Shown: one piece after another, positions 12,396-63,624 of the stretch
Layout of the letters: each line of letters opens with the position of its first letter
How positions within the stretch are numbered: position 1 is the first letter of the stretch
Assembly (NCBI GenBank): GCA_010909165.1
Contig: VJWM01000301.1
Span: 49,334 to 113,333, forward strand
Source: Anthoceros angustus
Lineage: Eukaryota; Plantae; Anthocerotophyta
DNA: 64,000 bases
Direction of reading: 5' to 3'
The notes under the pieces: generated by a model
The model's input: only the letters and a program-made list of their open reading frames with translations
Databases searched by the model: none
Told to the model about the DNA's origin: nothing
Program-made: the position numbers and the translations under genes

Positions 12396-12960
12396 TAGAA
12401 AATTCTAGCATCACAACACCAAACCACTCGATACCGGTTGAAGGATCGTGGGCAGCCATCTTGGTGGAAAGAGGAGAGGAGAGGAGGCAAGTAGCTCTCT
12501 CACATTGAGATGAGGCTTGGAGGGTATTTATACCCTCCTAGGAAGCTCCAGAAGCTCCTAGGAAGGAGCACAAGAAGCTTCCTAGTGATTAGCTTAAGCT
12601 AAACTAATGATACTTAATCGACACCCAACTTAGACTAAGTGTATTAGTCTAAGTACATTGGGCTTAATACCCCTTACATGAGCGTGAGGCTGTATGTGGA
12701 GGAGGAGCACACGGTGGCTCAAATGATGAAGAGCGGAATAATGTGCAGGGCCTATAGACGCACGACGCCTATGGAAGACGCCAAGAAACCGCAGCAAGTG
12801 ATGAGGTGGAGGTTTTGGGGAGAATCGCTCGATCGAGGCGGGCAGGAGAGCGAGAGCGACGGAACCCCACCGCCGTAGGCTAGGCAAAGAATCATGACGG
12901 CTCACCGATTTTAGGGGAGCGCCACATCATAGGCCGAGGTTTCTTGGGTTAGGGATAGGA

Positions 12961-14005
12961 TGTTTTGAGGCCGCGGGTCAGAGTTACCTCGAATTGGTAG
13001 GAGCGCTGTGGTAGTGGGCCATATTTTCAGACATCGGAGTGAGTCGGGAGATCCAACCGAATGTATAAGAGACCCTGAGAGTCTCAATGCATAATCATGT
13101 GTGAACTCCGTGTTGAAGCGCGCCAGGTTGGTTAGGAGACGCCCCGATCAAGATCAAACTCGCTCGATGCACCGCTCGCACAAGAAGGCCGGAAGATCCT
13201 CGGATGGTCGAGAGCGAGTGGCCAAGCTCCACGCCTGGAGGGACGGAAGGCAAATCGACGACGCCGGGCGGGAGGTAGGGGTTGCCGCGAAGGCTGAGGC
13301 GGAATCCGGAAGGCGAATCGCCACCCGACTTGTTTTCCGATCTTCTTCCCAAATCCGCTGCCACCAGCGTGTTTCATTCCAAGAGGGGGTCTGTGGTGGC
13401 CCAAGGGGTCTGTGTGGCCCAAGAGGGGGTCTGTGTGGCCCAAGGTGGGGTCTGTGTGACCTGTGAGGAGAGGGAGAGAAGATTTATTTAGGAAGGGGAA
13501 GGTCCCCGAAAGGGTGGGTGAGTGCGCGCTGTAAGGGATTGTGTGTGCGTGTGGGAAAATCGGGAAATGGTTAGGGGAGAGTGGAAGTGAGTGGTGGAAT
13601 CGCGGGGAACTGGCGACGGAGTGAGGCGCCGCGGCACTCGAGGTCGTGGTGCATAGCTCCCGGGAAGGATCCGAACGCGGAAATTCCGGGAAGCGAAGTG
13701 AGGGGGCATGTAGGCGTGTGTATGCCCATAACCCCAAGGTCGCGCCGAGAAGTCATGACAAATAGTCACCATGCGCTAAGGCGCGGTGGGACCCGCCAAG
13801 AACCACCACGCGGTGGCCGAGTCTCCACGGGCGGGTTTGGGTATGGTAGCCGGGAGAGGAGGGGTAGTGAATGACGGGTAAGTCTAGAATCCATAGTTTT
13901 AGAACATCTTGACACAAAACCATTCCCTTGGGATCAATCCGGACTACAAATTACATAGAGGGTAAATGTGGCCTCATGCCTTCGGATGCAAAAACCCATT
14001 CCACA
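12961..14005 (+). repeat. Family G LTR shared between G0 and G1
   Basis: Starts TGTTTTGAGG after purine run AGGGATAGGA (start inferred). Ends CCCATTCCACA, followed by a PBS. The paralog at 40100-41132 (minus) has the same ends. Confidence 0.7.
13381..13458. repeat. ~21-bp tandem repeat x4 within the G LTR
   Basis: GGGGTCTGTGTGGCCCAAG units; only about 2 units in the paralogous LTR near 40645-40685. Confidence 0.8.
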
Positions 14006-40099: not shown

Positions 40100-41215
40100 T
40101 GTGGAATGGGTTTTTGCATCCGAAGACGCAAAGAGGCCACATTTACCCTCTATGTTGTTGTAGTCCTAGGATTCGATCCCAAGGGAATGGTTTTGTGTCA
40201 AGATGTTCTAAAACTATGGATTCTAGACTTACCCCGTCGTTCACTACCCCCTTCTCTCCCAGCTACCATACCCAAACCCGCCACCGTGAAGACTTCGCCA
40301 CCGCAGCTGGGTGGTTCAACCACCGCGGGCGGGTCCCATCCAGTGCCGCCTTCCGCTGGTGACTATTTGTCACCCACTTCCACAGCCCTTGGGGCGGCAT
40401 ACACACGCCACATGCTCACTTCGCCTGTGAGAATTTCCGCTCGGATCCTTCCCGAGCTATGCACCACGACTCTCGAAAAGTGCGCGCCACTCCGCCCGCC
40501 TCAGCGATTCCACCACTCACTTCCCACTCTCCCAACCATTTCCCGATTTTCTCACACGCACACACAATCCCTCATGCCAAGACTCACCCACCCTTTCGGA
40601 CCTTCCCTCCGAATAAATCTTCTCCTCTCCACAGTCACACTCCCTCTTGGGCCACATGCACTTAGACCCTTGGGCCACAGACTCTCGAATGAAACACTGG
40701 TGGCAGCTTGGGAAAGAAGATCGTGGAAGAAAACACCGGCCGCTTCATGATTCGCCCGGCAGTTCCGCCTCAACCTTTCGCGGCAACCCCTACCTCCCTT
40801 CTGACGTGCGTCAGTTACCTTCCGTCCCTCCCAGGCGTGGAGCTTGGCCACTCCGCTCTCGACCATCCAGGGATCTTCCCGGCCTTCTTGTGACGAGAAA
40901 GCGGTGCATCGAACGAGTTTGATGCTGATCAGACGTCTCTAACCAACCTCGCGCATAGCTTCAACACACGGAAGTTCACACCTGTAATTGTCTGTTAAGA
41001 GAGACTCTCAAGGGTCTCTTATACATTCAGCTGTGGATCTCCACAGCTCACTCCTACCAGTGTCTAGAAAATATGGCCCACTACCACGAGCGCTCCTACC
41101 AATTCAGGTAACTACAGCCCGCCCTCAAAACATCCTATCCCCTAACCCAAAAAGAAACCTCTGGCCTATGATGTCGCTCCCTAAAATCAGTAGCTGGCCC
41201 GGGTTGCGCTTAGCC
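40100..41215 (-). mobile_element. Family G copy G2: 3' LTR (40100-41132), PPT and adjacent UTR
   Basis: Reverse complement of 12885-14005. No PBS beyond 40100, so this is a 3' LTR. Continues at 52902-53431 beyond copia A. Confidence 0.8.
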
Positions 41216-42021: not shown

Positions 42022-44475
42022 TCACCGGGGGAGTCCCTTAGTTAAAATATCAGCCACGTTCTCCTTGGTGTTGACATACTTCAGGCAGATAAGTCCTTGC
42101 TCTACTGCTTGCCTAATGAAGTGGAACTGTATCTCAATATGTTTTGATCTCGCATGCAAAACTGGTTTGTCATAGTGCGATTGCACACTGACGATCACGA
42201 CGTAGCATAGCGGTTGTGCCCATGAAATCTCATCTAGGAAGGCCCGGGCGAAACTTCTCGTCGCTGTGGATAGGGCCCCATACTCCACGACGAGATCAAT
42301 CTGCCGTGAGTCTCTTTTCGATCGCTAACCAACTAACACAACCTTGTAGTAGTACATGAAGTCGCAATGGACTTTCTTGAGTCTACATCACTTGCCCAGT
42401 CTGCATCTGAGTAGGCCATGAGAACGCTGGAACTCTGCTGCTGATAAGTAAGGCACATGTCCTGTGTCCCTTTCAAATATCGCAGAATTCTCTTAACTGC
42501 AACCCAATGCTTAGGTCCTGGATTTTCTAAGAATCGGGATACTATACCTACAGCTAGTGATATGTCCGGTCTTGTCCATCCAGCAAGGTATAAGAGGCTG
42601 CCTACTGCTTCACGGTAGGGGACAAGGGACATCTCAGCCTTTTGAGAGGCAGTAACAGGGCAATCCTCTATTGACAATTTCTCACTAGTTGAGACAGGGG
42701 TAGACACTGGATTCACATTTTGTAGGTTAAATTTGGTGAGCAGTTGACGAATAAAATGTGCTTGATGAATGGTGACTGAGGACCTATCAGGAGAGAAGGA
42801 AAACTGGATTCCAAGTGCAAATTTCAGAAAGCCCACATCGGTCATGTCCCATTCCTGTGACAGTGCCTGCTTAATATGGGTAAGGATTGTCTGATCACTG
42901 GCAAAAAGAAAATTTTCATCTACGTACAGTGCTATAATGCAAATGTGTTTGGACTGCTGCAGCACATAGACACTAACGTCTGCTGTAAGTGGGATGAAAC
43001 CTAGTGATCTCAACTTCTTGTCTGCCCTGGAATTCCAGATACGTGCCGATTGCTTTAGTCCATTAATTGATTTGAGTAGCTTACATACCTTGGTAGGGTC
43101 TGTCACATAGCCTTCCGGTTGCTGCATATAAATAACGTCGTCAAGGGGTCCATTGAGGAATGCTGTCTTTACGTCCATTTGGTGGACTAACAATTTGTGC
43201 TTGACAGCATAGCATAGAAGAATTCGCATAGAAGTAGGCTTGACCACAGGGCTAAAAGTTTCATGGTAGTCTAGGCCTTGAACTTGAGTATAGCCACGTG
43301 CTACTAACCTCGCTTTATATCTTGCTACACTGCCGTCAGGATTCAGCTTGAGTTTGAACACCCACTTGGAAGTGATAGGTTTCCCGTCCTTGGGTAAGGC
43401 AACCAGTTCCCATGTGTTGTAGGAAATCAGGCTGTTGTATTCAGAGTCTATGGCCTTTTGCCATTCTAAAGATTCTGGACCCGTTAGGGCTTCTTTGTAA
43501 GACATGGGTGTATTTGGTGGATCTATTAGTGATGACGCCACAGAGTTGGCAAAGGCAGCAAGATTAAAACGTGGTTGTTCTTCTTGAACAGGTGCAGTAA
43601 TGGTCTCTTTGGATCTGGATGTAAGGGTATCTCCAGCATATAGGAGGCTCTGGCCAACTGGGCTCGAGGACGGCGCGCCCCGTAGAACGCTCTAATAGGT
43701 ATCCGACATCCGCTTGTTCGTGTTCAGTTGTATAGGGGCAATCTGTACACCAGCCGACCAAATCTAATCGGTTTTTTGTTGACTCAGAGGATGTTCAAAG
43801 AACGACGCTCGTGAATGTGGGCTGCATTGCTTTGAGGAATAGGTTCGTGATCGTGCACAAAGTGAGTGGAATGTCGAAAGTATCAATGTCAGGGAATACT
43901 GTAAAGTCGTCACTGTTGAGAAGGTCATCGGAGAAATGGCCATGAGCTGTAGGTTGTGGCAGTGGAGTATGACTATGAGAGGACTGGATATGAGCTTGGA
44001 GGATGAAACTCTCATTGAAACTAACACTACGTGCTAGGGTTAACTGTCTGGTAGAAGGGTTGAAGAGTCTGTAGCCTTTGGATTGCTCTGAGTAGCCGAC
44101 AAAAACAAGTTTAATTGCTCGGTCATCCATCTTACCTCGCCTGTCTTCTGGAACATATGCATAGGCTGCAGAGCCAAAAATGCGAAGGTGACTGATACGA
44201 GGTTTGTGTCCTGTCCACCTCTCAAACGGAGTATAGTCATAAAGAGGCTTAACAGGTAGCCTGTTCTGAGTATAGTTAACAGCTGCAATGGCTTCAGCCC
44301 AATAACCACGTGTCAAACTAGCCAGTGATAATGTAGCTCGACATCGTTCTTGTAAGGTTCGATTATAATGTTCAGCGTAAGAGTTCTGTGGAGGGTGATA
44401 AGGCACTGTAAGTTGATGTAGGATGCCTTTAGCCTTGAGCAGTGTCTGGAAATCATGGCTCAAATATTCTGGTGC
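42022..44475 (-). CDS. Copia A pol, 3' part (integrase C-terminal half, RT, RNase H)
   Basis: ORF 43795-44493 with HQLTVPYHPPQNSYAEHYNRTL; 402-aa ORF 42333-43541 with YKARLVARGYTQVQGLDYHETFSPVVK, QMDVKTAFLNG and IALYVDE; ORF 42022-42288 with RSKHIEIQFHFIR and ENVADILTKGL. Confidence 0.92.
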
Positions 44476-44480
44476 GTTGT

Positions 44481-47400
44481 TGTTGATGCACAAGTGATTT
44501 AGGTGTTCGCCAGCAGACTAAGTTCTAGGGCACGTTTCATTAGGGTTATTTACTTGTACGTAGTTGCTAGCTTAAATACTGGCTTAATCTGCTTATTCAT
44601 TAGTAGATTACAACTTACTATTGTAAGCCTACTTAAGTGTCATGTACACAAGTAAATTACTTCTTCTTCATTATTCTCTACTTTTAGATGGTATCGAGCC
44701 TAGGTTCGGCCGCCTCACACAAGAACCTGATCTGTGCAATCCAGCATGACGCCCGCATCAAGCAAGATCTCAACATAAAGATCCCGGCCTCAGCATGCCT
44801 CGGCGCCGCCATCCAAAGAGTTTTGCGCCACAAGGCAGACCCACATCGCAAGTGACCAGACTTTGCAGCGATTGCCTGGATCGCATCATCGCACCCAGGA
44901 GCGCACCGCTCCACCACCCACGCCCGCGATCCGCTTCCATCGCCATCGCACACCAAGACCGAGCCGCCTCAAAGACAATTCACACACTCAACACATCGCC
45001 ATGGTCGGCTTACATCGCGCCTCTCCTGCAAAGATTCACCGCAAGTTCGTAGTATTTCAAAATTCGATCAATTGCATAGAGTCGCAACTAGAAGCCCCGC
45101 ATCTAGAAGTGCTTGCCATGATGCCGCAAGTAGACTATGTAGACCACTAAATTTGCGACTCGCGACATGTTTGCTTTTGATCCATTAGCAACAGCAGAGG
45201 CCAACATCGGCGCCGTTGCCGCATGATGGCCGAATCCACCACCCACCAACACAACATTAAATTTCAACACCACAAACCGGATTTGAGACCGTGATCGCTC
45301 ACGGAAGCGATTACGACATATGGCAGATGAGGATCCAAGCCTTGCTTGAGGAGCATGACCTTATGGGCATCGTCGATGGCACACACCCTAAGCCATCCAC
45401 AACATCAAACCCACCAGCAACTCCAGATGAAATTGCAGGATGGGAGAAGAGTGACAAACGAGCCCGCAACATTCTTATTTCGGCAATCGATAAGAATATG
45501 TTACAACATACACACGGCCAGGCAACTTCAAACGGCATCTGGAACACCTTCAACGAGATGTTCCAAGCCCAAAGTTCAATGTCACTAGTAAATGCAACAC
45601 GTCAATTTTACTCATTGAGAATGAAAGAATCGGTTGAATAAAGACGCGCATAACTTTAGGTCCGCAAGGGCAAAGTTATCCACCAGCACCACCTCACAGT
45701 AATCGCAAGCGATCTTTCTAACCTCCTTGCTCGGTTCATAAGGTAATATCTGTCTTCTCAAAACACGGCTCGACAAAGACAAGGAGGTTCGCACCTTACA
45801 CACTTTCTGAAGTCGTTGCAGCCCTTCTTGAAGAAGAATCCAGTCGAATAGGCACTTCACGCTCCAATATTGGAGCCAATCACGTGCTCTTTGCATCACG
45901 AGGCCGTGGTGCAAGGCGAAGGTTTTAGACCAGCGGTTTTCCTCGCGAGCCCATCGGGCCCAAAGACCTTCAGTCCAAGGCAACCACAAAATGTAATTCA
46001 AGGGAGCATGCAACCGGTGCAAAATCATTGGGCACTATGAAAACGAATGCCGTAAGAAGATGTCAGTGAACCTCACGAGACAAGGGAGCGAGTCACATGT
46101 CACCACAACCAACAAAAACTGCAGAAATTCAATATTGGCGATGCCTTACACTTACGAGGATGATCCTCATCGATGGTTCCTCGACTGTGGGGCTACCACC
46201 CATATTTGCGCAAGATCGACATGTTCAACTCATACCATCAAGTATTATCCGACCAACACGTCTTGCTCTGAGACGGTGCATTACCCATCAGCAGGTCAGG
46301 AGATATCAAGCTACGGCTTGCAAACGGAGAAACACTCCTTATAAACGGAGTTCTGCACGTCCCAACAATGACAAAGAATTTGCTATCAGTCCGCAAGCTA
46401 GCAACTGAGCATGACCTGGTAATCACATTCGTTGGTAACCACTGCACCATTAGCCATGCAAAAGACCCTGACCACACAGCCCTTGCTCACGGCTTACCTT
46501 ACAATGATTTGTACCTGCTGAACATTCAATCCTACTCATCTTTGTCGGTGAGACTCCGTAACAAAACAAAACAAATTCCTACTATAATCGCCGGTCACAT
46601 GAACCCGAGGTATTTGAACTCATTTGCCAATCTCGCAATGTACAGAGATCCAATTAAACTTCATGTACAACAGGACTTTTTCTCGAAACTGTAAGTACAC
46701 CAAACTAAATCAATCGCCATTCAATGACCTCAACCTACTGTGGCTAGAAGACTGGAAGTCATACATTCGACATTTGTGGTCCCATGAGGCGCTTTCCTTC
46801 GGAGGACACTCATACTTCCTCACCTTCATGGACGAGTGGAGTAGGTATACCCATATATACTTCTTGAAGCATAAGAGCAAGCTTTGATTACTTCCGAGAG
46901 TTCCTCACCACCGTAGAACGCCAAACCGGCTTCCTAGTTGGCACCGCGAATGGACAATGCGGTGTGAATACACAAGCCAGCCTTCCTTCAGAACTCAAGG
47001 GCATCCTCGTGCACTGCTCCTCATACTCCTCGCACAAAACCCCTTCGCAGAGAGGCTCAACAGATCCATACTTGAAATCTCTAGATCCCTTCTCAAAGCT
47101 AGGATCTAACAAGGGATCTGGGGGCGGGCCTCCACCGCAACCTACCTTAAGAATAGACTACCAACCAAAGACCTCCCAAACATCACACCTTACGAAAGAT
47201 GGACCGGCAATAAACCAAGAATTTCACTTACGTATCTTTGGGAGTCCATTTTGCCCATATAGCGTATGTCAATCGAAGCAAGTGGACGACAAGAGCGTAA
47301 AACCCCGCTCATAGGGTACTGATCAAGTTAAAGCCTATAGGTTATTCGACCCCTACAGCCGAGAGGTCATTCACTCTAGAAGTGCACATTTTAATGAGGG

Positions 47401-50001
47401 CAACGTTCTTCACCATTACCTCACCAGTACCCAAACTGCTACCCCCCTCCCTGATGCCAGCCTTTATGGACACTCCTTCGCTGATTCCCCTCTTGATCTT
47501 GAGGGGGCCCACTACGACCCAGATGATCTACAATCTCAAGCTGTGAATCAGCAATTTTCCATCCCAGGTCCTGCACCCATTGTCCAACCAAAGATCACCG
47601 CCCCTTCTTCCGTACCCACACTAGAAGCAGTATGCCACTAGGGTCGCAGCCACAACTCATCTACCAACCTCCCGATTCAAGTCAGCACACAGAGGTAAGC
47701 GAACTCCTAGGTATTCCCGAACCTCACTCACCACCGCAGAACCCGAATAAAGAACTCCCTGCATCATCTCGACATAGGCCTCCCGAGACGAATGGAGCCC
47801 CATATGTACCGGAGATATCCTCATACAAGACAAATTGCAGAAGCAGACGCCTGGACACACAACAGCAAAGAAGTTCAAATAGCTCTTCATCAAGCATTAT
47901 CAATCGAAATGCAAGGAGTCCCACTCACAATAGAAGAGGCTTTCAAATCTCCAGAGTGGACAGCAGCTGCAAAAGATGAGTATGACTCTCTTATAGCAAA
48001 TAAGACTTGGGAACTGATAGACTTGCCTCCAGGCAGAAAGCCCATATCCTGCAAATGGACATTTCGGAGGAAGCTCAACCCGGACGGCACAGTGTCAAGA
48101 TACAAAGGACGACTGGTGGCCAGAGGTTTCACTTAGATCCCTGGGTTCGATTATGAGGAGAATCAGTACCCCTTGTCAAATCAACTTCCATTCGAACTCT
48201 TCCGGCCTTTGCGCACATCACCACCTCGATATTCATCAAGTCGACGTAAAACAAAGATTCTTATACGGAACACTCAACGAGGAAATCTATATGTTGCAAC
48301 CACCAGGGTTCGCGAAGGATAACAAGAAGGTTTGCCGACTCTTGAAGTCACTGTATGGTCTCAAACAGTCAGCCCAAGTATGGAACGAGACCGTAGATCA
48401 TTACTTGAAAAAATGCGGATTTGTTCCCCTAACTGCTGACTCAAGTGTTTACCTCATGAGAGATGGGGAGAAGTTCGCCATTGTGACACTTTATGTCGAG
48501 ACAATTTCGTCTTCGAAATGATTCGCTCATGTAAGGTAAAAGACCTTTTATCCAAGGAGTACAAGTTTCAATTGACACCGGGCACGCCTCGGCAATTTGA
48601 GAGAGACCCTAAGAACCACACGTTCTTCATACATCAAGCACACTATGTGGAGCAACTTCTTGAGCGATTCAATCTCAAAGACGCAAAGCCCGTCGCAACA
48701 CCCATAGCAGTGATAAAGTATCGAGAACCGCCTACCACACTAGAGGAGCGTATGGAGATGATCAACATACCATATAGCGAGGCGAGGGAAGTATTCGACT
48801 TATCTATATGGACTCGGACGACGTGGCTCAGTCACAACATTGCTTCACGATATCCGCCAAACCCCAGTGGCACACATCGACACATGTTAAGCGCATTTTG
48901 AGATATCTGAAAGGCACCAAGACGCTCGGACTTTACTACAAAGGTGACCCTAAACACAAACTTACACTCACTTCTTTCTCGATGCGATCAAGGAGACCCG
49001 ACGCCGATCCACACGCCATCGTATGATGATGAATGGAGGATGCATTTCATGGGCGTGTAAGAAGATGCCCACACTATGCCTCTCTTCAACTGAGGCAGAA
49101 TACGCTGCAACCTCACCGGCGCGAAGAAACTCGTGGATCGATAATTCACGAAAGACATTGGAGAGGAGCGACGCCCACAATTCTTGCAGACAATCATCAA
49201 AATAGCTATGACTTTGAACCCCGTTTTGCACGCACGGACTAAGCACGTAGAGATTCAGCACCACTTTATTAGGCAAGTAGTCGCTAGTAAGCAAGTAGCA
49301 CCGCAGATGTAAATAACGATAACACGGCAGATCTCATGACCAAGGGATTGTCGAAGCATCTGCATGAAAGGAACGTACAGGGTATTGGACTTATAAGCAA
49401 GGAGACTTATCTAGGGTTCGCACCCACCGCCAGCAAATTTTAAGGGGAGCTCAAAGATCGACAGGAAGAGGAGTCTTCGCAGCTTGAACATCCATCTTCA
49501 CCAACTCAACAGCTTTATATGGCCGCAGAGGTGTTGATGCGCGATCATGAACTCTTCCATACCGACGCCTTCCCAAGCCGCATGTGATGCTCCAGTCCTT
49601 TTCACCGGACTTCTTCGAATCCTGCCTAGGAACTTCCTGCTCGAGACTTGCGATCTTGTTGCTCACAGCTGAGATTAGGTGACTCATGAACTGAAGGAAC
49701 CACCAGATGCTTGATAAGATGCTCAAGTAGAACGGAGGAACGCTGCAAGATGGCAGCCCATCCGAGCTTCAAATTAGAACCAAGTCACGACGAGGGGAGT
49801 GTTGATGCACAAGTGATTTAGGTGTTCACAGACTAAGTTCTAGGGCACGTTCATTAGGGTTATTTACTTGTACGTAGTTAAGCGCTTTAAGCATTTAACG
49901 TTATTCATTAGTAGCATACAACTTACTATTGTAAGCCTACTTAAGGCGTGTCATGTACACAAGTAAATTACTTCTTCTTCATTATTCTCTCTACTTTTAG
50001 A
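44481..50001 (+). mobile_element. Full-length Ty1/copia element C nested in the integrase of element A
   Basis: LTRs 44481-44687 and 49800-50001. Perfect TSD GTTGT at 44476-44480 and 50002-50006. PBS TGGTATCGAGC at 44688. PPT GAGGGGAG at 49792-49799. Confidence 0.93.
45240..49420 (+). pseudogene. Copia C gag-pol (frameshifted)
   Basis: gag GSDYDIWQMRIQALLEEHDL; knuckle GHYENECRK; protease WFLDCGATTHIC; integrase SFGGHSYFLTFMDEWSRY; RT ISCKWTFRRKLNPDGTVSRYKGRLVARGF; RNase H LSSTEAEY. Confidence 0.9.
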
Positions 50002-50006
50002 GTTGT

Positions 50007-51804
50007 CACTACGCAAGTGCTTAATACGCTGACCAGATTGATTTTCTGCCATGAGCATATACTCTAGAAACTTCTCATATGTTTGGCGTCTTGTATGCAG
50101 AAAGTAAAGACAGCAAAAATGGCTCCATTCGTCCAGAAAAGTAAGGAAGTACACTGCTCCACCGAAAGAGTGGGTGGACATTGGTCCGCATATGTCGGTA
50201 TGTATCACATCCAGCAATCCTTTGGCTTTAGTAGGACTGGGGTCATTATAAGGCTTCTGTGCCAGTTTTCCTATCTGACAGTTCTCACAGAACAATGTGT
50301 CTTGGACTTTAAAATTGATGGGGTCTTTGTATAGGTGTGGCTTTTGCACTAGGTGTCTAACATACGTAAGACTAGGGTGATAGAAACGACAATGCCAGAG
50401 AAGTGTACGATCAACGTAGGGCCTTGCATCAGCAACTAGGGTCTGAGCCACAGGTAAGGTGTCAAATTTGTACAAGTCATGGTAAAGGATACCTTGTGCT
50501 ACTCCTTGGCTGACGTCAGTGCTGGATGTGATGATGCAACCTGCAGGTGTAAAACTAACATAGAGGTTGTGGTCAGCAACTAGTCTCTGCACAGATAGAA
50601 GATTCTTGGTCATACTGGGAACATGTAGCACGTGCTGTAACTGAAGTGATTCACCACCTCTGAGAGGTAAAAGTACTTCTCCATGACCGGCTATGGCTAG
50701 ACCACTGTCATCTCCAAGTAACACAAATTGTCCAGGCAGAATATCAGTGTATGTGAGAAAACTGGTTCTCGAGTAACAAATGTGGTTAGTTGCTCCTGAA
50801 TCCAGGAACCACATGGTTGCATCCGCTTTTGTTAGAGTCAAACAAACTGCCAATATTGCTGGTGCCTTGTTGATGCTGTGAGAATTGCTTGACTGGCCTC
50901 TGATCACAACATGTGATTCCCCTGTAGGCTGATCACGGCGAGGCTCTCCAGCACGTTTCTTCCTACATTCACTTTCGAAATGACCAGGTATTCAGCACCA
51001 GTTACAAGTACCTTTCTTTCTTTGTGATGTAAAACCAGAAGGTGCTGAAAAGGGCCGTCTTGACTGGAAGGGTGGTCTGTAAGAACCTCTTCCTCTGCCT
51101 CGTCCTCTTGTTGTGAAGAGGATATGGGAAGATTGCTGGTGCTGTTGGTTGCGTCCTGAAGCAACACGACTAGATTCTTCCTCAAGAAGAGCACCTATAA
51201 TCTCAGAAACTGTTGTAGATGCCTGGCCATCTCCTACTGCCTTGCGCATAATGGAGTTCTGAGAACTAACGAAAGCTCCGTAGCTAGCAGGCAGTGATGT
51301 AAGAAGAACAACTGCTGCTTGGTCCTCTGGAACATCAGTCCCACACGAGGATAGCTTTGCACGCAAGGTACGAAAGCGATTGATGTGATGCTCTATGCTA
51401 TCAGAATCTTTCATCCTGAGAGCATAGAAATATCTTGTTGCATTAAAAATCGACATGGGATCTTTTGCTGCAAACATATCTCTGAAAACCTTCCAGACTG
51501 CTGCTGAGGTCGTTTGACCTTGTGTATGATGCATCATATTCTTGTCCAAAGGTCGACAATTTCTTGCTCGCCTGCTTTTGCCCAAGCGTACCGCAATTGA
51601 CGGAGGAGAGGCAGATGCCGGGTTTGTGGACTTGCCAGTGACGACATCCATCAGGTCATGTTCCTCCAGCACTGCAGTCAGTCTCATTTCCCAGACTGGG
51701 TAGTCTGATCCGTTGAAACGATCCTTGTCTTTGATGTCCACTTTAGTTGTGTTGTTAATTATTGTATTGGATGCAGTTCCAGATCCTGATCCTGATCCTG
51801 ACAT
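50007..51804 (-). CDS. Copia A gag, protease and integrase N-terminal half
   Basis: ORF 50992-51891 with KDRFNGSDYPVWEMRL and KKGTCNWC; ORF 49951-50907 with WFLDSGATNHIC, LLWHCRFYHPS and DVIHTDICGPM ending KHLRSDN at the C insertion, resuming as APEY at 44475. Confidence 0.92.
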
Positions 51805-52901
51805 ATTTAATGGCTGTAGATTAAGGTCTCTAGGCGAGGTAAGAAGATAAAATGGGTCAATAGGTATTCTGTGGGGTGGTGACCACATCAACTATAGTAG
51901 TATATTTTCTACAGAATGGTGAGATCATCGCCAAAAAGCTTAGCGAGTGATGTGAGGACAAGCTCTACAGGTTCTGACATGTGTTTGCTGACAGGTTTGT
52001 GTGTATGTGATTGCAGCAGTTTTCTGGGTGCAGTTCTAGGTGCAGCATTAATGTTTGTGACTAAACCTCCGTACGACCGGCGATAGTGATGAACTTTCTG
52101 GACTAGAGAAACTATCTGCTCTCTGAGGTTGTTGATTTCCTTCCTGTGCTTTAGCTTGTCAGAAAGTGCGGTGTTCTGTGCTATAGAAAGTCTAATCCTA
52201 AGATCATGTATGTCCCGTGTTGGTAATGATGGCTGACAAGTGCTAAGTTTTCTACATGCAGCGTGACAGGGACAATATGGTGAGAGTGCTATTTCCCGAT
52301 TACAGCAACAAGTTTGTGTCTAGGGGCAAACTGTAGGACATGGACAAGATGTCCTAGTAGTGCGCCTCTTGCTGTTCCTCGTCATGACACGCTGCTCAGG
52401 TATTTTGTCGCTGGCTGCGTTTCCATTGTGAGATTAATCGCCAATGCTCTCGTAGCATTTTGAACATCAAGTCTTGTGCCTGCCTGTGGTTGTGTGATCA
52501 CCGGTGATTTCGACGGACAGCCGATGCGCCGCTTTTCTCCATCGTGCCGAGACTGATCGGCAACAAAATTTCTTTCAAACCCTAGCCGGGTGGCGTGGTG
52601 TATATTCGCCTTCAATCAAGCAATCAACTGGTCGCACGCCATCATGCCAGATGGCTAGCAAACATATAGGGCTTTGATACCATAATGTAGTCGATTACAC
52701 GAGGATCTCGAAAAGCGAAGCGCAGGAGCTGAGGGACGACACCGCAAGGTGCACACATGTAACAATTCGCTACTATCAATTACAAAGAAAAAGATGTCTT
52801 ATAGTACAATGTAAGAGTTAGGTACGCCTCACATAACCTACGCGATTTTAGTTTATATAAAGCTAGGGTTATGGTTTGATAAATACATATCTAATATAGT
52901 C

Positions 52902-53599: not shown

Positions 53600-54963
53600 A
53601 TGGCGGAACTCTTGACCGACCAAGAACTTGCCGCCGCCAAGGCCAAGTTCTTAGCTGACCAAAAGGCTAAATGGCTCGAAGACGAGCAAGCCAAATGGGA
53701 AAGAGAACTGGAAGAAATAAAGGAGAAGGAGAGAGCGAAAAGAAAATCTGACTTAAAAACCCTAGTGGTTCAAGCAGATAATTTCAAAGACAAAGATAGA
53801 TTCAATGGAAGAGGGTATGACGTATGGCAAAGTCGTGCCCAAGGAGTGCTACGTAGTCGTGACTTGTGGGAGATCGTCAACGGCACCGAGCCTCGGCATG
53901 CTTGGGACTCAGATGCACAAGATGTTTGGGATGCCAAGGACCAGAGAGCTCGAGATGTTTTAGTTGGTGGCCTTACCGAAGCGATGGTGCGACAAGTTTC
54001 CGAAGCAGACACCTCCTGTGATATGTGGGAGCGCCTAGCTCAATTATACGCCTCCAAAGATAGAATGAGCTTATTGACCGCTACCCGCCATCTCCATACC
54101 CTGAAAATGAAGGAGAATGATTCCATTGATCGCCATATAACTGCTTTCCGCGTCGCCAAAAATAATTTTGAAGCGTCATCTCAAGAGAAGCTCTCCGAGA
54201 AAGCAAAGATTTATTGCTCTCCTTGCCTCCTTACCACCCTCCTATAGGGCCTTTGTGACAACACAAAATGCTGTCCTTAGAGCCGCACAGAAAGAGAAGA
54301 AAGCAAATGGCTCCGCCACACTGGACATGAGTGTCACTGAATCAATTGGAGCCATCATACAGGAGGATGCCAGTCGTCGACAAGAGAATCCTAGATCCAC
54401 CAAGCAGCAGGTGATGTTTACAGGATAAGGTAGAGGAAGAGGACGCGGCAGACCCTTTCCTCCTAGGCCGAATCTTGGTCAATATTCTCCGACTGGAGAA
54501 AACTCTTCTTCTGCAAAAGGTAACAAGAAGAGTGGAGTTATATGTAATTGGTGCAGAATGACAAATCATATGGAGAAGGACTGTAGAAAAAAGAAGAACA
54601 GCGAGCCTAGGAAGGAGGCCACCCCTGGAGCACATGTTGCCATGAAGAAACAATCTTCAGCAACACCATCAGCTCTCACTGTCTGCTTGGCATCATCCAA
54701 GCCCTCAAACCAAAATTGGTATTTAGACAGTGGAGCAACATCACATATCTGTCACAACATAAACTCTTTTGAGTCTTACTCGCCCGCCAAAGGACATCAA
54801 ACTGTCATATTGGGTGATGATCATAACCTCACTATCTCTGCTGTTGGTTCAGTTGTTCTCAGATGCTCTACAGGCCAAGTTCTCTCACTTTCTCATGTCC
54901 TCCATGTACTATCCATGTGTAAAAACCTAGTGTCCGCCGCCAACTTATGTTCAGAACATAGCA
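53600..54963 (+). pseudogene. Truncated copia D gag-protease
   Basis: ORFs 53600-54247, 54168-54428 and 54558-54977: KDKDRFNGRGYDVW, knuckle CNWCRMTNHMEKDC, protease WYLDSGATSHIC. Cut by an E LTR. No own LTR or PBS seen. Confidence 0.88.
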
Positions 54964-55240
54964 TGCAAATATATTAGGGTTAGGGCACTATTCATTAGGG
55001 CACCATTCATTAGGGCACCCTAACTTAAACATTATTATATGCCTAGGGCATTAAGTAGTTACTAGTTAGTTGATCTAGGTAGTTAGTAGTTATAGTAGTT
55101 ACAACTACTAGGCGGTTACAACTACTTATGGTTGTAACCACCTAACCACCTCGCCTGTAAATAGGCTTTGTACTTTCTATTAAATCAATTGTATATGCTT
55201 AAGCATCTTTGCTTAAGGAGTTAGTGTGTGATTTTCATCA
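54964..55240 (+). repeat. Copia E LTR, second copy
   Basis: Inverted near-identical copy of 21379-21629. Ends ATTTTCATCA; start degraded (TGCAAATATATTAGGG). No PPT before and no PBS after. Confidence 0.88.
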
Positions 55241-55576: not shown

Positions 55577-56865
55577 TGTGGAGCTACTTTTGCTAGCGGA
55601 CTAGCCGGGCGCACACTAACCCAGGGTCGATGTAGTACGGGGGTTCGCTCCACAGGGAATGGACTCGTGCTTATTCTGCCTAAGCTCTACAATTGGGCAC
55701 CTGAACGGACTTCATCATGTTGGGTCCGGCGGTTCCACAACCCTAAGTGTGTGCCCCTTCACAACTCGTCGGGCCAGACGCGCAGCCACCGGACCTTCCC
55801 ACAAACCTCGCCCGGGTGTCTCCAGACCACCGAACAAAGTTTAGCGACGCTGCCTCCGCCAATCCACGACTCCAAAGGCCCCGCCCTCAACTCCTCGTCC
55901 GCCACAACTCCACCTCAACACACACGCCGCAACGCGACCCTCCTCCTGCACCCATAGCTCGTTTTCGCAACACCAGCACGCCGACGTATTCACACCGGAC
56001 CCCCCTTGCTCCTTCCGGCTGCTTCACGTTCTGCGGAGAAGTGGCTTCGCAGCCTGCAACCCCACAGCCTCCATTCTAGCAGCCTCCACGGATGGCTTCT
56101 GCCCAGCAAGGTCATCCCCAAGCGCCCCCTAACCCTTCCTACCGGGTTCACGCTCTGGAGAAGTGGCCACCAGATCCCACAAACCTCCTCCGTTCGTGAC
56201 CTCCAAGGTTAGTCTCGCACCCAGAAATCACCATGAGCACCTCCCGAGCTCAGTCCAACCTCGTGCACCCATCAAGCGTTGGCGGAGCTCGTCACCGTAG
56301 CTCTAAACACATCCCCTACCACCAATTAATCCTGCACGGTGACGCAGGAACTCGCCCGCCCCCGAGCAAAGGCAAGAGCACACTGAGCGCAAGATGGTAC
56401 CCGGATAGTTCACCTCTTGCGCCAGCCTTTATATCCCCACACCCTAATCTAACCCACCCATGTATGTACCTTAACCCCGGATCGTGGTAACCGCCGCACG
56501 GACTTCATTCCGAACGCCCGGTCGGCCGGACTTACTCACGAACGACGCAGGGTCGGACTTCATCTGGCCGAACGCCGCCGGACTTATCTGTCGAACGCCG
56601 GCCCGGACTATTCACGAACGCCGGGCCACCGGACTTACTCCGTCAGACCTCGCTCGGACGGACCACTCCGTCGGACCTCGCCCGGACGGACCACTCTGTC
56701 CGCCAATGGACCAAGGGTCTATGGACTGCATTGTAAGTGCAATCTAGCCAAAAATGGCCTTATTGGCTAACTCCACCCTATTCCTGCTAAGAAGTGACAA
56801 CGCAAAAAATAAATCAAGCCCAAAACAAGTCGCCGAGGTCATGTACACCGGATGGGCGCTCCACA
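55577..56865. mobile_element. Solo LTR of a separate family (F), 1289 bp, inside the H LTR
   Basis: Perfect 8-bp inverted ends TGTGGAGC...GCTCCACA. Flanks CCTGA/CCTGC (4 of 5 TSD match). Host LTR resumes colinearly. Internal CCGGACTT..CGAACG repeats at 56496-56700. Confidence 0.75.
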
Positions 56866-57133
56866 CCTGCAATTGTGTTGTGTCGTTGTAGGTCGAGAAT
56901 TGGTGATTTTTTCCGGAGCAGTGCAAGTGGTGCAGCTGCTGTAAGAGGGAGAGTAGAGGGCGCCTTGCTTATTTAGAAGGCTGAGGTAGGGTGTCACTGC
57001 AGGTAGCGATTGTTTTCCCCAAGACCCGATCTTTCACACAAGTCTCATGGGACGAAACCCAACGTATAAAACGACAAAGGATAAGTGTCAGCTAGAGGGG
57101 AAGCCCAAGCCCCGGGTTTTCCTCCCACATTTT

Positions 57134-57151
57134 TGGCGCCGTTGCCGGGGA
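57134..57151 (+). promoter_or_regulatory. Primer-binding site complementary to the tRNA-Asp 3' end (Athila type)
   Basis: TGGCGCCGTTGCCGGGGA, 4 nt after the LTR end CCCACA. Confidence 0.9.
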
Positions 57152-59086
57152 TTTGTTGCTGAAAGATTGAAGTCTTGTGGTTTCCATCGCTAGGATGCAG
57201 AATGTTTGTGGTTCGGGAGAGACTTGAGAAGGAGATCTAGTGACCATATGTTGTAAAGAAGGAGCATCACGCCCTCTAAACGTCGTGAGTGTGTGCGGAT
57301 GAGAAATTGCAGACACTAAGGGGTGTGAGTTGCTTTCTCCTTAACGACTGTGTGTTGGAGATCATGAAGATGCTTGCAGATGTCTGGTAGGGGAAAGACT
57401 TGAGGAGAAGAGCATAGAAGATCACCCCCACCCGTCACTGCAAGGGATTTGAGAGCTGCACGAAGAAATCGATTGAGAGAAGAGACCGCTACTGCCGCCA
57501 CCCGTCGACAGCAGGAAGAGAACGAGTTACGGGCACTCGAGGAGGAGGCTATCTTCGCTCAGGGTTGTAAAGAAGAGAACGGTGAGCAACAAGAGGACGG
57601 ATCCGAGGAAGACGGTGCGGAGTTCACCCTCCCCTGAGCGCGGTTGGCACTTCACGACCGACGCAGGGCCTTCGCAACGCTGGGCCTTTCGAGGCGGTGA
57701 GTCCACCTCGGTTTCGAGCGAAACCGACAGTGATGAAGAGGCCGTCAGTAGTGGGGAGTTCCAAGCTTGGTCTTAGGACCTAGTCAACGCCGATCGCATC
57801 GCCGCCAACATAGAGGGAACTGCTGGCGAGGGGCGCCGACGCCAGAACGGTCGAGGCCGCGATGAGACCGCGAGGCCGTGGCGCCCGACGCGAGTCCGCT
57901 CGGCGTAAAGGGAGGCGCCGAGTTGGGCCGAGATGCGCGCTCCACTTTCTCGATCGCGCCGAGGCGTGAGGTCTGCTCATTTAAGGGTTGCTGCCCAAAT
58001 TTATAACTCTTCTTTCTCTCTTCTTCCATGTAATTGATAAGGTAACACAAGTTTTGATTTTAGCTTTCGCTTGGTAAAAGTCCCAATTTTCAACTTTTAA
58101 CTGCTTTTTTGGACGTTATTGTCTCGATCTGTGAGGACATATTCTATTGGGGTTGACGGGGTGTAAACAGGTGATCCCGGTGGTGCATAGTCTTCGGAGT
58201 AATGCTTTTTGATTTGCTCGTTGTACGGTCCAGATAAAAAGTTTATCATCTCAAAGATTTCGTCCAGACGTGAATATTTCTACAAGCAATTTTATTTGTT
58301 AGTAATTGAAGTTTTTAAAATTTCAAACAAGCAATTTAATATACTAACCTCAAACAGTGCAAACAACTCCTTTTGTTTCTTCGATAACTACAAACGAAGG
58401 TGGAACAGGTCAGTAAGTTACCTCCATTTCAAGTCGAAGTACGTCCTGCTCGGTAAATACCTTTCTGACTAACAGATCACCACTTCGTTTCAATCAACTG
58501 TGAGGAGCTGGGAGTGTATTGTGTGCTTGTCTCTTGTAAGCCGTCATCTGGTATTGCTGTTTATTAGCGATTTGGGGTTTGAAGGTTATTCTTTTTTCTC
58601 TTTAATGTCTAAACGCTCACTTGCTGAAAAGGGCTTTGGTGTTTGTAGGGGGCTTCAACGCTAGGAGGGTTTGCCCCAACTTTCGGAAAATCTTGCTGGG
58701 AAAAGCATTTTGTGGTTTATTGTCTGATGTAGTGGTGTTGTAGTTTAATTTTGTCTTTCCCAGCTGGGTTTAAAATGGGTAAAATGCATCAGCTTTTCCG
58801 AATGCCTTTTTTTAAACCGTGCATGTCAAGAATGATAAGGCGAAACATGTTTGTTCGTCTCATTATCAAAAAGCAAAGGGCAGTCGGGCATGGGTTTCGT
58901 CGTCAGATGTTGTTGTTGTCTCAGTTGTTACCATCGCCCTTGCTTCTTCGATCATCTGATCATCAACTTCTAAACCTTCCAGCAGGTTTTATCTGGAATT
59001 GTGTTTTTCACAAGTAAGTTAAACAGTGTTGTTTTGCTTTGGTTTGTTTTTCTTGTAGTTCTTCTCTCACAGCTTTTTTCTCACAG

Positions 59087-62000
59087 ATGGCTCCAAAAAG
59101 AAAACCTACTGGACCTGCTGGACCCGGGAAGAAGCAAGTACCCATGTCTGAAGTCATGTCAAAGCCCTTTACAAGACAACGAGTCAAGTCTGCCATTAGA
59201 CATACTGCAACTCATCCTCTCAATGATGACGGTAAAATCGATGGCGTTCTTGTCCATAGTGAGGGAACGTATTTGGTTCCAGTGAAGGAGTGTCCAAAAT
59301 TGCCAAGGCGATTTTCTTCTAAAATGGCTGCTCGGCGCGCAGCCGAGTTTGCTCAAAAGAGAAGAAGATTGGACACTCGTCCAGTTCCTTTGGTGGAGGG
59401 CCCTTTGTCCTAAATCACTAAATACGTCCCTGTTACTAAGAGAGGAGTCGATTTTGTTGGTGAAAATGAGCATTTGATCACTAATGACACTATGGTACTG
59501 GATGCTGCGAAGACATGTCTCCAGACTGTAAGTGTCTGTGGGGCGGGTTTCTTGCAGCAGGCCAACGATTGTCCCGCCATGCCATCTGGGGTTGGTGAGT
59601 TTTCCATTCCTGTTATTGCCCCTTATCTAGAAGTGGTCCCTGATCAAGAGTGTCTTGATATGTTTGAAAGATTGAGAGTTTCGGAGATGTGTCCGGAAGA
59701 TGATTTTGTTATGGGCGCTGAAGAGATTGAGGATGAAGTTAATTTCAGAGAGCAAGGGTTTGATCCTTCTGTTCCTGATGGTGCTGTTTTTGATGCTCTG
59801 AGTGGGGGTGAGGATAAGTCAAAGCGTCAAAACAATTGGTATCGAAGTAGATTGAGAGCCTTTATGAAAGTAAGTGGTGTTAGGGGTTGGGATAGAGTAG
59901 TAGAAGATATCCCCCATAAAGATCTGAACTTGATTCTGATACCTTTCTTCCATCAAGTGCGAAATCTGAAGAACAACCTCAGGTTCTCCCCAGAAACGTA
60001 AGTGTGTTTTTTTCATTGAGTATTTCGGTTTTTTGAATCTTTGGCATCTTACCCTTCTCTGTTTTTCAGGTTGATGTCCTTCTTCCGAGGGTTTAATCGG
60101 ATCTTGATAAGAAAGTGTGTTCTCGACCAAAGCCGTTTGGGTTCTGATGTCCCTATCATAAATATGTTCCATGGTATATTTCATGGGGCACAGGCTGCCC
60201 TGGTGGCCTCGATGAAGATCAGCAAGGACCTTGGCATTGTTTCTTGCCGTAAGGAGGTAAAGGTCATTTCTGATGATGATGAGCAGAGGATCCTTGCCCA
60301 CAGGGACCATCAATGTTCGTTTGGTCGTGGCGCTCAAAAGAGGTATATCTGCTCTTTCTTTTGAATTCAGTTGAAGGAAATTGTTGTTTGACCTTGAGTT
60401 CCTTCTGGTGCAGGTGTGCATACTTTTGTATGAATCGGTTTGGGGTTCGTGGTGGAGAGGAGCTACACAACCTCCTGATTATGGATTTCACCTTTGGATC
60501 AGATTCTCGCGGGAATTTTGTCCAGTAAGTTCCTCTTTGTGTCTTGTACAGTCAATGAATTTTTTGGGTATTGGCTGATTTCTAAACTGTTTGCAGGTAT
60601 GAGGAACGAATGTCAAAAAACTATAAGGTTGATATGCGAAACTACCAAAGCGAGCATTTTTGGCCAAAGCTCAAGAATTATGAGTTGGATGTGATCCAAA
60701 CCTTCAGGGCTGTTATTGATCACTCGCCGAAGTGGACTGAATGTGACCGAAATAAGGGTATCCAAGTGTTTTTGTTCAACTCGCCAATTGACAATCCGAG
60801 ATCAAATGTAAGTTTAATCTTTTGTTCTTTCCATCCTTTCCATTCATTGTTCTGTTCATTCATCTGTAAGTCATTCTTTTCTATTATGCACTAATTCGAA
60901 ACTGTTTCACCAGGCATGGTATGCAAAATTGCGTGTTTCGAAAGGGATGCTTTCTCGGTACATGAAGACAATGGCAGAAGCTGCTGGTCTTGAAGGCTAC
61001 TACACCAACAAGAGTTGTCGTGTGACACGTCTAACAATGGCTCAGGTGCCCTCTGATGCTGGCAGAAGTGTTACTGGGCACAAAACAAATGCTGGGTTTT
61101 CAAGGTACAGGGTGTGGTAGCTTATTCTCTTGGTTGTGTCCTTGTTTCTGATGGTTGTGTTCCTTTTTCTGATATCTTGTGGATTCCGCAGGTATGATAG
61201 GTCAGGGCAAGCGAAGCAGGCAGCAGCAGCAAGGGTTCTGGTGCCTGGAGAACGAAGATCTTACAAAGAGTTGCTGACTGAGGAACTCAACCGTATGCAA
61301 GATGATTTGTGTGGTGTGCTTCCATCAACTGTTGTTACTGTGACTCCGGAAGTTGTATTTGCGAGCCAGCCTGAAGATGTAAGTGTGTTTGGGTTTGAGG
61401 ATAAGCTTCTTCAAAAATGTTTTGACATTGTGTAATCGTAGGCTCATGTGAATTTCCCTTGCAAGCTCAAGGCGATCAAACTGTAAGTCAGCAATTTGTG
61501 TGATTTTGCGAATTTGTGGTTTGCAGAATCTCTGCTATGCTTTAGTGTGTTCTGACTGCTTCATTCTCAGGTTATGGCTGTTCCCACACCTGTAGAATTC
61601 ATCATGAAAATGGATTGCAAATCAATGTCAGCAGCATCTCAGATATTGTTGAAAGTTGTATTTTGCGTCCTGAAGTACAGGTTGGTACTCCTTGCTTGTT
61701 TTACCTGTAGGCGTTCTTTTATAATGTGGTTTAACTCCTTATGCTTTGACAGGTAAACAATGCAGTGGTTAAAAGCATTGCTCAGGAAAGGCAAATCAAT
61801 AACAGCAGACTAATGACTGGGACTATTCAAATTGAAAATGATGGCAGGGTAAAGTTTCTGACTGTAGAGTTTGTGACTGTTCATTCATTTGTGACTGTTT
61901 ATTCATTTGGAGTGCTTTTGGCAGATGTCAAATTTGTCTACCAAAGATGCAATCTCAACTACGAGTTTGAGCAGTTTCACTGTTCCAGACTTCAACATTG

Positions 62001-62661
62001 ATGGAGTGGTCTCTGAGTTGCGGCCTACTGTGCCTGCAAGTGATAAAGCGCCCAAAGTGCAACAAGATCGGAATTTGGCCATATTACACGTGACGGGTTC
62101 CAGAATGGGACCGGAATTCAGTAGCTTTAAATATTATCGATATCTCCGAGAACGGGACTTGGAATTTGATAGACAGAAAGTGGAGCGAGAGTTTCAACAG
62201 CGGAAAGAATTGGAGGCATTAATTGAGAGGCAGAGGCGGAAAGCCGTCGAACTCCGAGTATCAAAGCGAGGGAGAAAGCTCTGAAATTCAAAGGCAAAGA
62301 AATGCGAAGGAAGACAACAAAGAAGAAAACCGAGAGCAGAAGGAGCAAGAGAGGCGAGAATGCAAAGTGGAGACATCAGATCTAGAATGATCCTGGGCCT
62401 CGAGAAATTCCCAGATCCAATCATGAAAATCCCTCAGGAACTGTAAGTGTTGTTACACTCCCTTAATTAATTGTACTTGAGTGAAAATTAATGTTTGTGA
62501 TTGGGCAGGTTGTTTTACAAGAAAATGATGAATTTTTTCGAAGTCCTGAACTTCAGCAAGTTCTAGCGAGCTATGATAATGTTGGGGCCTATAAAACCAT
62601 CTCGACGCGTGAAAATTACATTTTTAACTTGTACAATTGTACAGTGAATTTTCCGAAATAA
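59087..62661 (+). CDS. Multi-exon DUF3504/Crypton-type tyrosine recombinase, with one in-frame stop at 59411-59413
   Basis: GT-AG exons 59087-59997, 60070-60342, 60414-60524, 60597-60807, 60914-61104 and 61192-61378 join in frame. They give MNRFGVRGGEELHNL, YEERMSKN, AWY...MAEAAGLEGYYTNKSCR, VTGHKT and SRY. Probable further exons at 61442-61482, 61571-61680, 61753-61848, 61925-62442 and 62509-62661 need at least one frameshift and end IFNLYNCTVNFPK*. The N-terminus MAPKRK is NLS-like. Confidence 0.82.
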
Positions 62662-63209
62662 GGTCAGTATGATTTCTGAAGTAACTTTGGTTATTGCTTT
62701 ATATTTTTGTTTTGCTATTACTCACTTAATTTATATTTTTATGTAGGTCTTATTGTGGCAGTAACGGGGATCAATCTATCCGGGTATTTACTCTATGTTG
62801 TTTTAATTTGACTTTCATTATATTCTGGATATACAGGAAACTCAACAAAGAAAAGGTTTCTTTGTTGGTTTTTTGTATATCCTGGATCCGCATGAATGGT
62901 GTTTAATCGAATATGTTTTACCGCCATTTAGCGATTTGGGATTCTAGGATGAGCTTTCATCTAGATGTACCGTATTCGCTGAGTTAATTTTTTCCACCGC
63001 CGCCATGGTTTCAACAGCTATGGTGGATGCATTTCACCTGACATGCCATATTTTTTACTCTGTTGTAATAGATTTTACTATATTGAGTAAATAAAATGAC
63101 CAAATGGTCAATTCTCTCTCTAGAAATCTATCCTCTAGGCCCCGAAAAAAAACCGAGGTAGCGCGTCGAGGCCCCAGACGAGGCCGCGACTTTACGATTT
63201 TGGGACGGT

Positions 63210-63320
63210 TGTGGAGTGATTTTCTAAACCAAGTGGTCACAAAGAGGCCACATTTACCCTCTTTATCGTTGTAGACTTGAGATTCGTACCCAAGGGAGTG
63301 ATTTCGTGTCAAGACAACCA
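63210..63320 (-). repeat. 3' end of an LTR related to family G
   Basis: Shares TGTGGA, AAAGAGGCCACATTTACCCTCT and CCCAAGGGA.TG.TTT.GTGTCAAGA with 40100-40205. Confidence 0.65.
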
Positions 63321-63540
63321 AAACATAGCCAATCCAACCAAACACGACACACCAAACATCTAGCGCTGACAGCTACTACCCTAACAACACTCACTGTGGC
63401 TATCTTAGCCACGCGACCGATACCCCGAACGGATGACCTTGCTAACTTAGCAACCGCCTCTATTTCTAGAGGGGGGGTCCACCTTGGGATCAGTCGGCTA
63501 TTAGGTGGGTCCTGTCGGGATCCAAGTGGATAAAGCTGAT

Positions 63541-63560
63541 CTCTCTCTCTCTCTCTCTCT
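63541..63560. repeat. (CT)10 microsatellite
   Basis: Direct reading of the sequence. Confidence 0.95.
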
Positions 63561-63624
63561 TACTCATCCACAAAGTTAGATCCACCAATGATTACGCCTC
63601 ATAACTCTTCCCCTCCTCCTCTCA

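Follow-up and report, generated by a model that had tools for sequence, protein, structure and literature searches.

A damaged, probably Crypton-like tyrosine recombinase gene with multi-copy relatives in ferns

Among the classes of eukaryotic DNA transposons, Cryptons are the least well understood. They are defined by the possession of a recombinase only, without terminal inverted repeats (TIRs) or long terminal repeats (LTRs), and have been described from fungi, oomycetes, diatoms, animals, and Chlamydomonas (PMC3212892), the last being the only organism in which their activity has been observed (PMC9977147); DUF3504 proteins are widespread in Opisthokonta (PMC13465315). No description of a land-plant Crypton family was found in open-access full text queried for Crypton together with fern, Marchantia, or land plants, in line with the statement of an earlier, sequence-only reading of the DNA considered here that no well-characterised land-plant example was known; one survey table annotates Crypton in all major groups including land plants, on the basis of automatic annotation (PMC4438587). 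The present analysis concerns one gene, at 59087-62661 on the forward strand of a 64,000-nucleotide stretch (the window) of contig VJWM01000301.1 from Anthoceros angustus. The gene is best read as that of a Crypton-like DNA transposon from a land-plant lineage, of which we could find no description in the open-access literature, and we put at roughly two in three the probability that it is the sole gene of such a transposon, present here as a damaged copy in a land-plant (fern-type) genome.

The gene was reconstructed by reading the three forward frames of 59000-62750 and joining the segments by script. The first six exons splice to a single frame of 628 codons (1884 nt) and are separated by introns of 72, 71, 72, 106, and 87 nt, all five of which run from GT to AG, four with a GTAAGT or GTATAT donor, and which end in a T-rich tract and a CAG acceptor; their G+C content (0.32-0.44) lies below that of the exons (0.45). 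The exons of the whole gene are as follows.

Exon 1, 59087-59997, forward strand: basic start resembling a nuclear localization signal (MAPKRK...), acidic linker, and helical N-terminal (core-binding-like) domain beginning at about 59771; contains a TAA at 59411-59413.
Exon 2, 60070-60342, forward strand: remainder of the N-terminal helical domain.
Exon 3, 60414-60524, forward strand: box I (FGVRGGEE; arginine at 60448).
Exon 4, 60597-60807, forward strand: SKN lysine at 60616 and beta-hairpin region; preceded by a phase-2 intron, 60525-60596.
Exon 5, 60914-61104, forward strand: box II (NKSCR; lysine at 61010, arginine at 61019) and TGHK (histidine at 61079).
Exon 6, 61192-61378, forward strand: nucleophile tyrosine at 61193 (RYD), then a helix.
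Probable exons 7 to 10, 61442-61482, 61571-61680, 61753-61848, and 61925-62442, forward strand: positions taken from the strongest splice sites; a charged stretch of coiled-coil-like character lies among them.
Last exon, 62509-62661, forward strand: conserved C-terminal tail, NCTVNF at 62635-62652, stop codon TAA at 62659-62661.

Homologous proteins are collinear with the window and unbroken across introns 2-5, so the spliced model is not a chance construct: residues 96-265, 261-366, and 365-470 of the relative P0015 fall on 59771-60361, 60412-60810, and 60911-61291, and residues 1-60 and 61-128 of P0027 on 60610-60810 and 60917-61108, respectively. Proteins of the fern Adiantum align to exon 1 only from 59771 onward, and P0011 aligns weakly from codon 124. 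The in-frame splicing of six exons, the basic N-terminus, and the positions of the arginine, lysine, second arginine, histidine, and tyrosine codons (60448, 60616, 61019, 61079, and 61193) proposed in the sequence-only reading are all reproduced, each motif position being exact on re-reading. Its six exons hold as exons, but the gene continues beyond them by about five more, to 62661, with a frame that is probably damaged.

The catalytic positions of the window copy are six, standing in tyrosine-recombinase order. The sixth, passed over in the sequence-only reading, is a lysine (61010) that precedes the box II arginine by three residues, giving K-x-x-R instead of H-x-x-R. In an alignment of 38 sequences, the box I arginine is kept in 14 of 18, the SKN lysine in 21 of 21, the lysine and arginine of K-x-x-R in 28 of 29 and 29 of 30, respectively, the GHK histidine in 24 of 27, and the tyrosine in 26 of 28; the single histidine found in place of the K-x-x-R lysine is that of a clam DUF3504 protein. 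Lysine likewise replaces the first histidine of H-x-x-R in type IB topoisomerases (Lys-220/Arg-223 in the vaccinia enzyme), and human topoisomerase I is among the fold matches described below; the overall likeness to these enzymes is far weaker than that to recombinases, the parallel being one of active-site chemistry only.

Profile and sequence searches placed the protein only in part. The single exons of the window gave nothing useful in Pfam, neither PF00589 (Phage_integrase) nor PF12012 (DUF3504), and a sequence search of the Protein Data Bank (PDB) returned no true match. Among the relatives, P0029 (32.8 bits), P0008 (29.0 bits), and P0013 (28.7 bits) pass the PF00589 cut-off of 27.1 bits and the Adiantum proteins fail it, while the best PF12012 score in the family is 13.8 bits (E 0.06; P0018) against a gathering cut-off of 29.7. 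A first structure model, of two domains and built on a shallow alignment, was poor (pLDDT 53), and its fold matches were discarded as meaningless. The fold was instead modelled with AF2 on the catalytic domain of P0015 (residues 225-480, 42% identical to the window) from the 38-row alignment, with pLDDT 80 and pTM 0.78. The best 50 PDB matches of this model are all tyrosine recombinases or topoisomerase IB (probability 0.96-1.00, TM 0.39-0.56), including Tn1549 integrase, XerH, XerA, and Cre (probability 1.00, TM 0.45-0.56) as well as the lambda and integron integrases; against Swiss-Prot models, XerC/D and the Tn554 and Tn916 recombinases come out on top, and ZMYM, QRICH1, and KCTD1 are not among the best 30 matches. 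The predicted fold and chemistry are thus those of a tyrosine recombinase.

As to the kind of tyrosine recombinase, two independent shape searches of the ESM Atlas agree. With the Atlas model of P0017, clusters carrying DUF3504/Phage_integrase rank first at TM 0.85/0.84 versus 0.63-0.71 for bacterial integrases, and with the AF2 model of P0015 they again rank first at 0.69/0.67 versus 0.57-0.60; the top-ranked clusters in both searches are eukaryotic, mostly molluscan, and of CryptonA-like kind. When the family profile is compared by hhalign with P0014, a clam protein matching PF12012 as well as PF00589, the two align at a probability of 80% (E 1.4e-5) over the SKN box, box II, GH, and the tyrosine. 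Judged from these models and profiles, the DUF3504/CryptonA type is the nearest known kind. Of the Crypton/DUF3504 assignment made in the sequence-only reading, the nearest kind therefore stands on two structure searches and one profile comparison, and the family nevertheless stays under the PF12012 cut-off; the two domain profiles that it had recommended for the spliced protein left the single exons without a match and DUF3504 below threshold in the relatives, with Phage_integrase recovered in three of these.

The resemblance to CryptonA/DUF3504 elements of animals and Glomeromycota (Kojima and Jurka 2011, PMC3212892; Glomhopper, PMC13465315) lies in a eukaryotic Cre-like recombinase standing alone, without reverse transcriptase (RT), in the structural and profile matches given above, and in the often intron-containing, multi-copy nature of both. 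In contrast to them, the window family scores under the PF12012 cut-off, has K-x-x-R rather than H-x-x-R, is extended at the C-terminus by a long segment that ends in a conserved tail of its own, and has a land plant as host, whereas DUF3504 has been described as opisthokont. Within the green lineage, CryptonF-1_cRei of Chlamydomonas reinhardtii, for which insertion and excision at a short target motif have been seen (PMC9977147), may serve as a working model of the mechanism; it belongs to the CryptonF group. Bacterial and phage recombinases (Cre, XerC/D/H, and the Tn1549 and Tn916 integrases) share the catalytic fold and the residue order, but at about 10-17% identity, and the window gene is eukaryotic with spliceosomal introns; moreover, the box II signature of the family was found in none of 185,579 prokaryotic species genomes, and in neither the IMG/VR viral contigs nor a metagenome contig set. 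The locus is an extension of a known kind to a land-plant lineage, not a new system.

Adiantum capillus-veneris and A. nelumboides are the only named species with members in the family, all of them hypothetical proteins, and word-indexed searches with two family alignments gave, as named matches, only Adiantum and one clam protein. A HMMER scan of 1.84 billion representative proteins with exon 5 (63 aa) returned 14 weak matches, among which P0001 (kinase repeats) and P0003 (cadherin-like) are false. Four short predicted proteins from ENA (P0002, P0004, P0005, and P0012) contain the box II segment twice in tandem, with 31-35% identity to exon 5, and may be a different, internally duplicated relative. 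The window protein is 36% identical to the Adiantum proteins over 350-390 residues (E 1e-65 to 1e-48). In the catalytic core, its identity is 36-42% both with the Adiantum group and with a second one, whose members come from Logan run SRR2148099, JGI metagenomes, and ENA assembly ERZ25073694, so that the window protein represents a third branch of the family.

The relatives are multi-copy. In A. capillus-veneris, copies with a mutual identity of up to 96% lie on at least eight chromosome-scale records, and several Adiantum gene models fuse the recombinase with pentatricopeptide repeat (PPR), O-fucosyltransferase (O-FucT), gag, or RT domains; fusion of one domain with unrelated genes in annotation is the usual look of transposon insertions. 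Two contigs of ERZ25073694 share a unit (9785-16286 of L006 and 1-6506 of L007) that is 99.94% identical over 6.5 kb and then diverges, and two JGI metagenome contigs have 6.6 kb in common including the recombinase locus (3830-10462 of L002 and 1-6632 of L004) before diverging; beyond the common stretch L004 enters a hAT-type DUF659 gene, its source organism being eukaryotic. Elements of this family may accordingly be larger than the gene. A sub-repeat of 1.8 kb forms part of the ERZ25073694 repeat, and its copies in L006 lie at 1026-2831 and 11980-13794.

In the window, where the recombinase is present in one copy, the extent of the unit is set by its neighbours, and one pair of short repeats was considered for its ends.

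Widest possible unit, 57131-63239, no strand: other repeats of the window stop at 57130 and resume at 63240.
16-nt direct repeat, TTAGCGATTTGGG(G/A)TT, 58564-58579 and 62928-62943, forward strand: brackets the gene.

The interval 57131-63239, of at most about 6 kb, contains the recombinase gene only; domains of RT, RNase H, or methyltransferase are absent from it, as are long direct, inverted, or split repeats, and the G+C content drops from 0.57 to 0.42 near 58000. The 16-nt pair, a possible terminal repeat, was rejected as evidence of the ends, being at chance level (about 0.4 such pairs expected in 8 kb) and having unlike flanks. The gene content and the Adiantum copy pattern would fit the definition of a Crypton. 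The phase-2 intron before the SKN box has a counterpart of identical position and phase in the distant relatives L001, L002, and L005, and less surely in L006, all four of which are without introns 4 and 5 of the window. Because the family keeps this old intron while occupying many sites, it is most likely to have spread as DNA and not via spliced RNA. A near-perfect hairpin of 16 nt (AAACTCAACAAAGAAA / TTTCTTTGTTGGTTTT, with a 3-nt loop) at 62838-62872, 180 nt past the stop codon, could be a feature of the transcript end or of a recombination site.

The window copy cannot encode the full enzyme, as the in-frame TAA at 59411-59413, passed over in the sequence-only reading, is codon 109; no plausible intron able to remove it was found, the sole GT..AG segment around it being 34 nt long and running into another stop. 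Breaks of the frame in the 3' half probably also prevent a full product. The introns between exons 6 and 11 are 63-88 nt long and of the same style as introns 1-5, and the eleven exons total 2802 nt, a multiple of three, ending exactly at the TAA at 62659-62661, so that the last exon is read in the frame of the NCTVNF tail. Under this strongest-site model, however, translation falls out of frame at 61571 and comes back into it at 62386: exons 8 and 9 can be read through only in a different frame, and exon 10 has one frame open up to a TGA at 62282 and another open only past a TAG at 62383. An open chain can be obtained via two atypical introns, 61293-61570 (278 nt) and 62258-62385 (128 nt, purine-rich, with a poor acceptor); brute-force splice chains were rejected as proof of an intact frame, since weak sites always yield an open chain and the outcome is uninformative. 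At least three lesions are more likely than one lesion plus two odd introns. No similarity of any relative to 61442-62442 was found. The open frame of exon 8 includes, at 61571-61610, the peptide C-S-H-T-C-R-I-H-H, of possible metal-binding spacing and common to no relative.

The tail is the part of the 3' half with counterparts elsewhere. Nine Adiantum proteins have N-[MF]-[HSN]-N-C-V-[VI]-N-V near their true C-terminus, and the window gene ends in N-L-Y-N-C-T-V-N-F, the motif common to both being N-x-x-N-C-[TV]-V-N. The tail pointed out in the sequence-only reading is therefore present, and akin to that of the fern relatives; the likeness to DUF3504 tails also claimed for it is conjectural.

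The intact gene from which the window copy derives would comprise some 11 exons, and its product, roughly 930 residues long, would have in order a basic nuclear-targeting start, a helical DNA-binding domain, a catalytic domain of Cre-like type bearing R, K, K-x-x-R, H, and Y, and a long tail ending in N-C-[TV]-V-N. By analogy with Cryptons, we speculate that the element would be excised by the enzyme in circular form and reinserted through site-specific recombination wherever a short matching sequence occurs, neither RNA nor reverse transcription taking part in the transposition. Two results weigh against a Crypton-like transposon: no exon or relative attains the DUF3504 cut-off, and Phage_integrase is attained by some relatives only; and in two gene models of A. 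nelumboides the recombinase is fused to a gag or RT domain.

The surroundings of the gene are retrotransposon-rich. Ty1/copia fragments with gag, Pol_BBD, integrase, RVT_2, and SH3 domains lie at 43795-44490 and 49951-51888 on the reverse strand and at 48153-48518 and 53600-54974 on the forward strand; the upstream neighbour of the recombinase gene is the unrelated Ty1/copia element from 53600, directed towards it, and the nearest Atlas clusters of this element, like those of a copia polyprotein fragment 8 kb upstream, are from Streptophyta. The gene structure, the residues, and these flanking elements agree with the description, in the sequence-only reading, of an intron-rich tyrosine recombinase gene amid plant-type retrotransposons. 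Three minor repeats were also observed, namely a 75-nt stretch at 63240-63314, repeated at 40129-40203 with 84% identity, with which another repeat starts just downstream of the unit; a (CT)n microsatellite at 63537-63562; and a 28-nt G+C-rich unit tandemly duplicated at 56637-56692, within the upstream retroelement.

Four other origins of the gene are worth comparing with a Crypton-like transposon. It is unlikely that the window holds a pseudogene from a family of domesticated fern host genes derived from a recombinase, rather than a mobile element, even though an intron-rich structure with one ancient intron and conserved N- and C-terminal modules would suit a host gene and domesticated Crypton genes exist in animals (PMC3212892). 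The catalytic residues are kept family-wide, which is unusual for domesticated DUF3504 genes (PMC13465315); many near-identical copies are dispersed over the Adiantum chromosomes and fused in gene models to unrelated genes; relatives are repeated with differing flanks; and the window copy is broken and set among retrotransposons. Being broken, it is not a working domesticated gene either, which the sequence-only reading had offered as an option. The recombinase could also be the module of a DIRS/Ngaro-type retrotransposon whose RT part has been lost or lies elsewhere, as might be thought from P0022, which fuses the recombinase to RVT_1, from P0020, which fuses it to a gag domain, and from the top match by language-model features, a cluster combining ALOG with integrase. 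Such an origin is quite improbable: the conserved intron and the lack of a linked RT argue against it, ten introns, one of them kept in distant relatives, being at odds with passage through spliced RNA, and no RT being called within 6-10 kb in L002-L007, just as none of the expected domains or repeats is present in the window interval; nor does the ALOG match recur in Pfam scans of the exons and relatives.

The repeated unit of L006 and L007, which extends at least 5.8 kb past the recombinase gene, would suit yet another origin, the recombinase end of a much larger integrated element, either cargo-carrying or virus-like. In the window, however, unrelated repeats set in within some 0.6 kb past the gene and some 2 kb before it, and the signature-based scan of IMG/VR viral contigs gave no relative, so that we hold this origin to be very improbable. 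Fungal or animal contamination, or mis-assembly, might be suspected from the nearest Pfam-annotated kind, DUF3504, having been described as opisthokont (PMC13465315). It is nonetheless unlikely, and in our judgment extremely so, because the copia elements sharing the one contig with the gene have their nearest clusters in Streptophyta and the closest species-named recombinases are on chromosome-scale fern records.

Returning to the Crypton-like transposon, a broader proposal may be made tentatively, as one that we regard as possible rather than probable: that land plants (ferns, and perhaps bryophytes) hold an old Crypton-type lineage of their own, sister to the opisthokont CryptonA/DUF3504, with a K-x-x-R site resembling that of topoisomerase IB and a C-terminal module peculiar to the lineage. 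It would have been passed on as DNA with its introns from a time before the sampled relatives diverged, and some copies might still be active. The window copy is only a damaged witness of this family. A distinct multi-copy fern family with intact catalytic residues would nevertheless extend the Crypton/DUF3504 kind to land plants, would serve annotators of transposable elements as a model for repeats left unclassified or mis-fused into gene models, and would offer a natural variant of the recombinase active site in which lysine replaces histidine.

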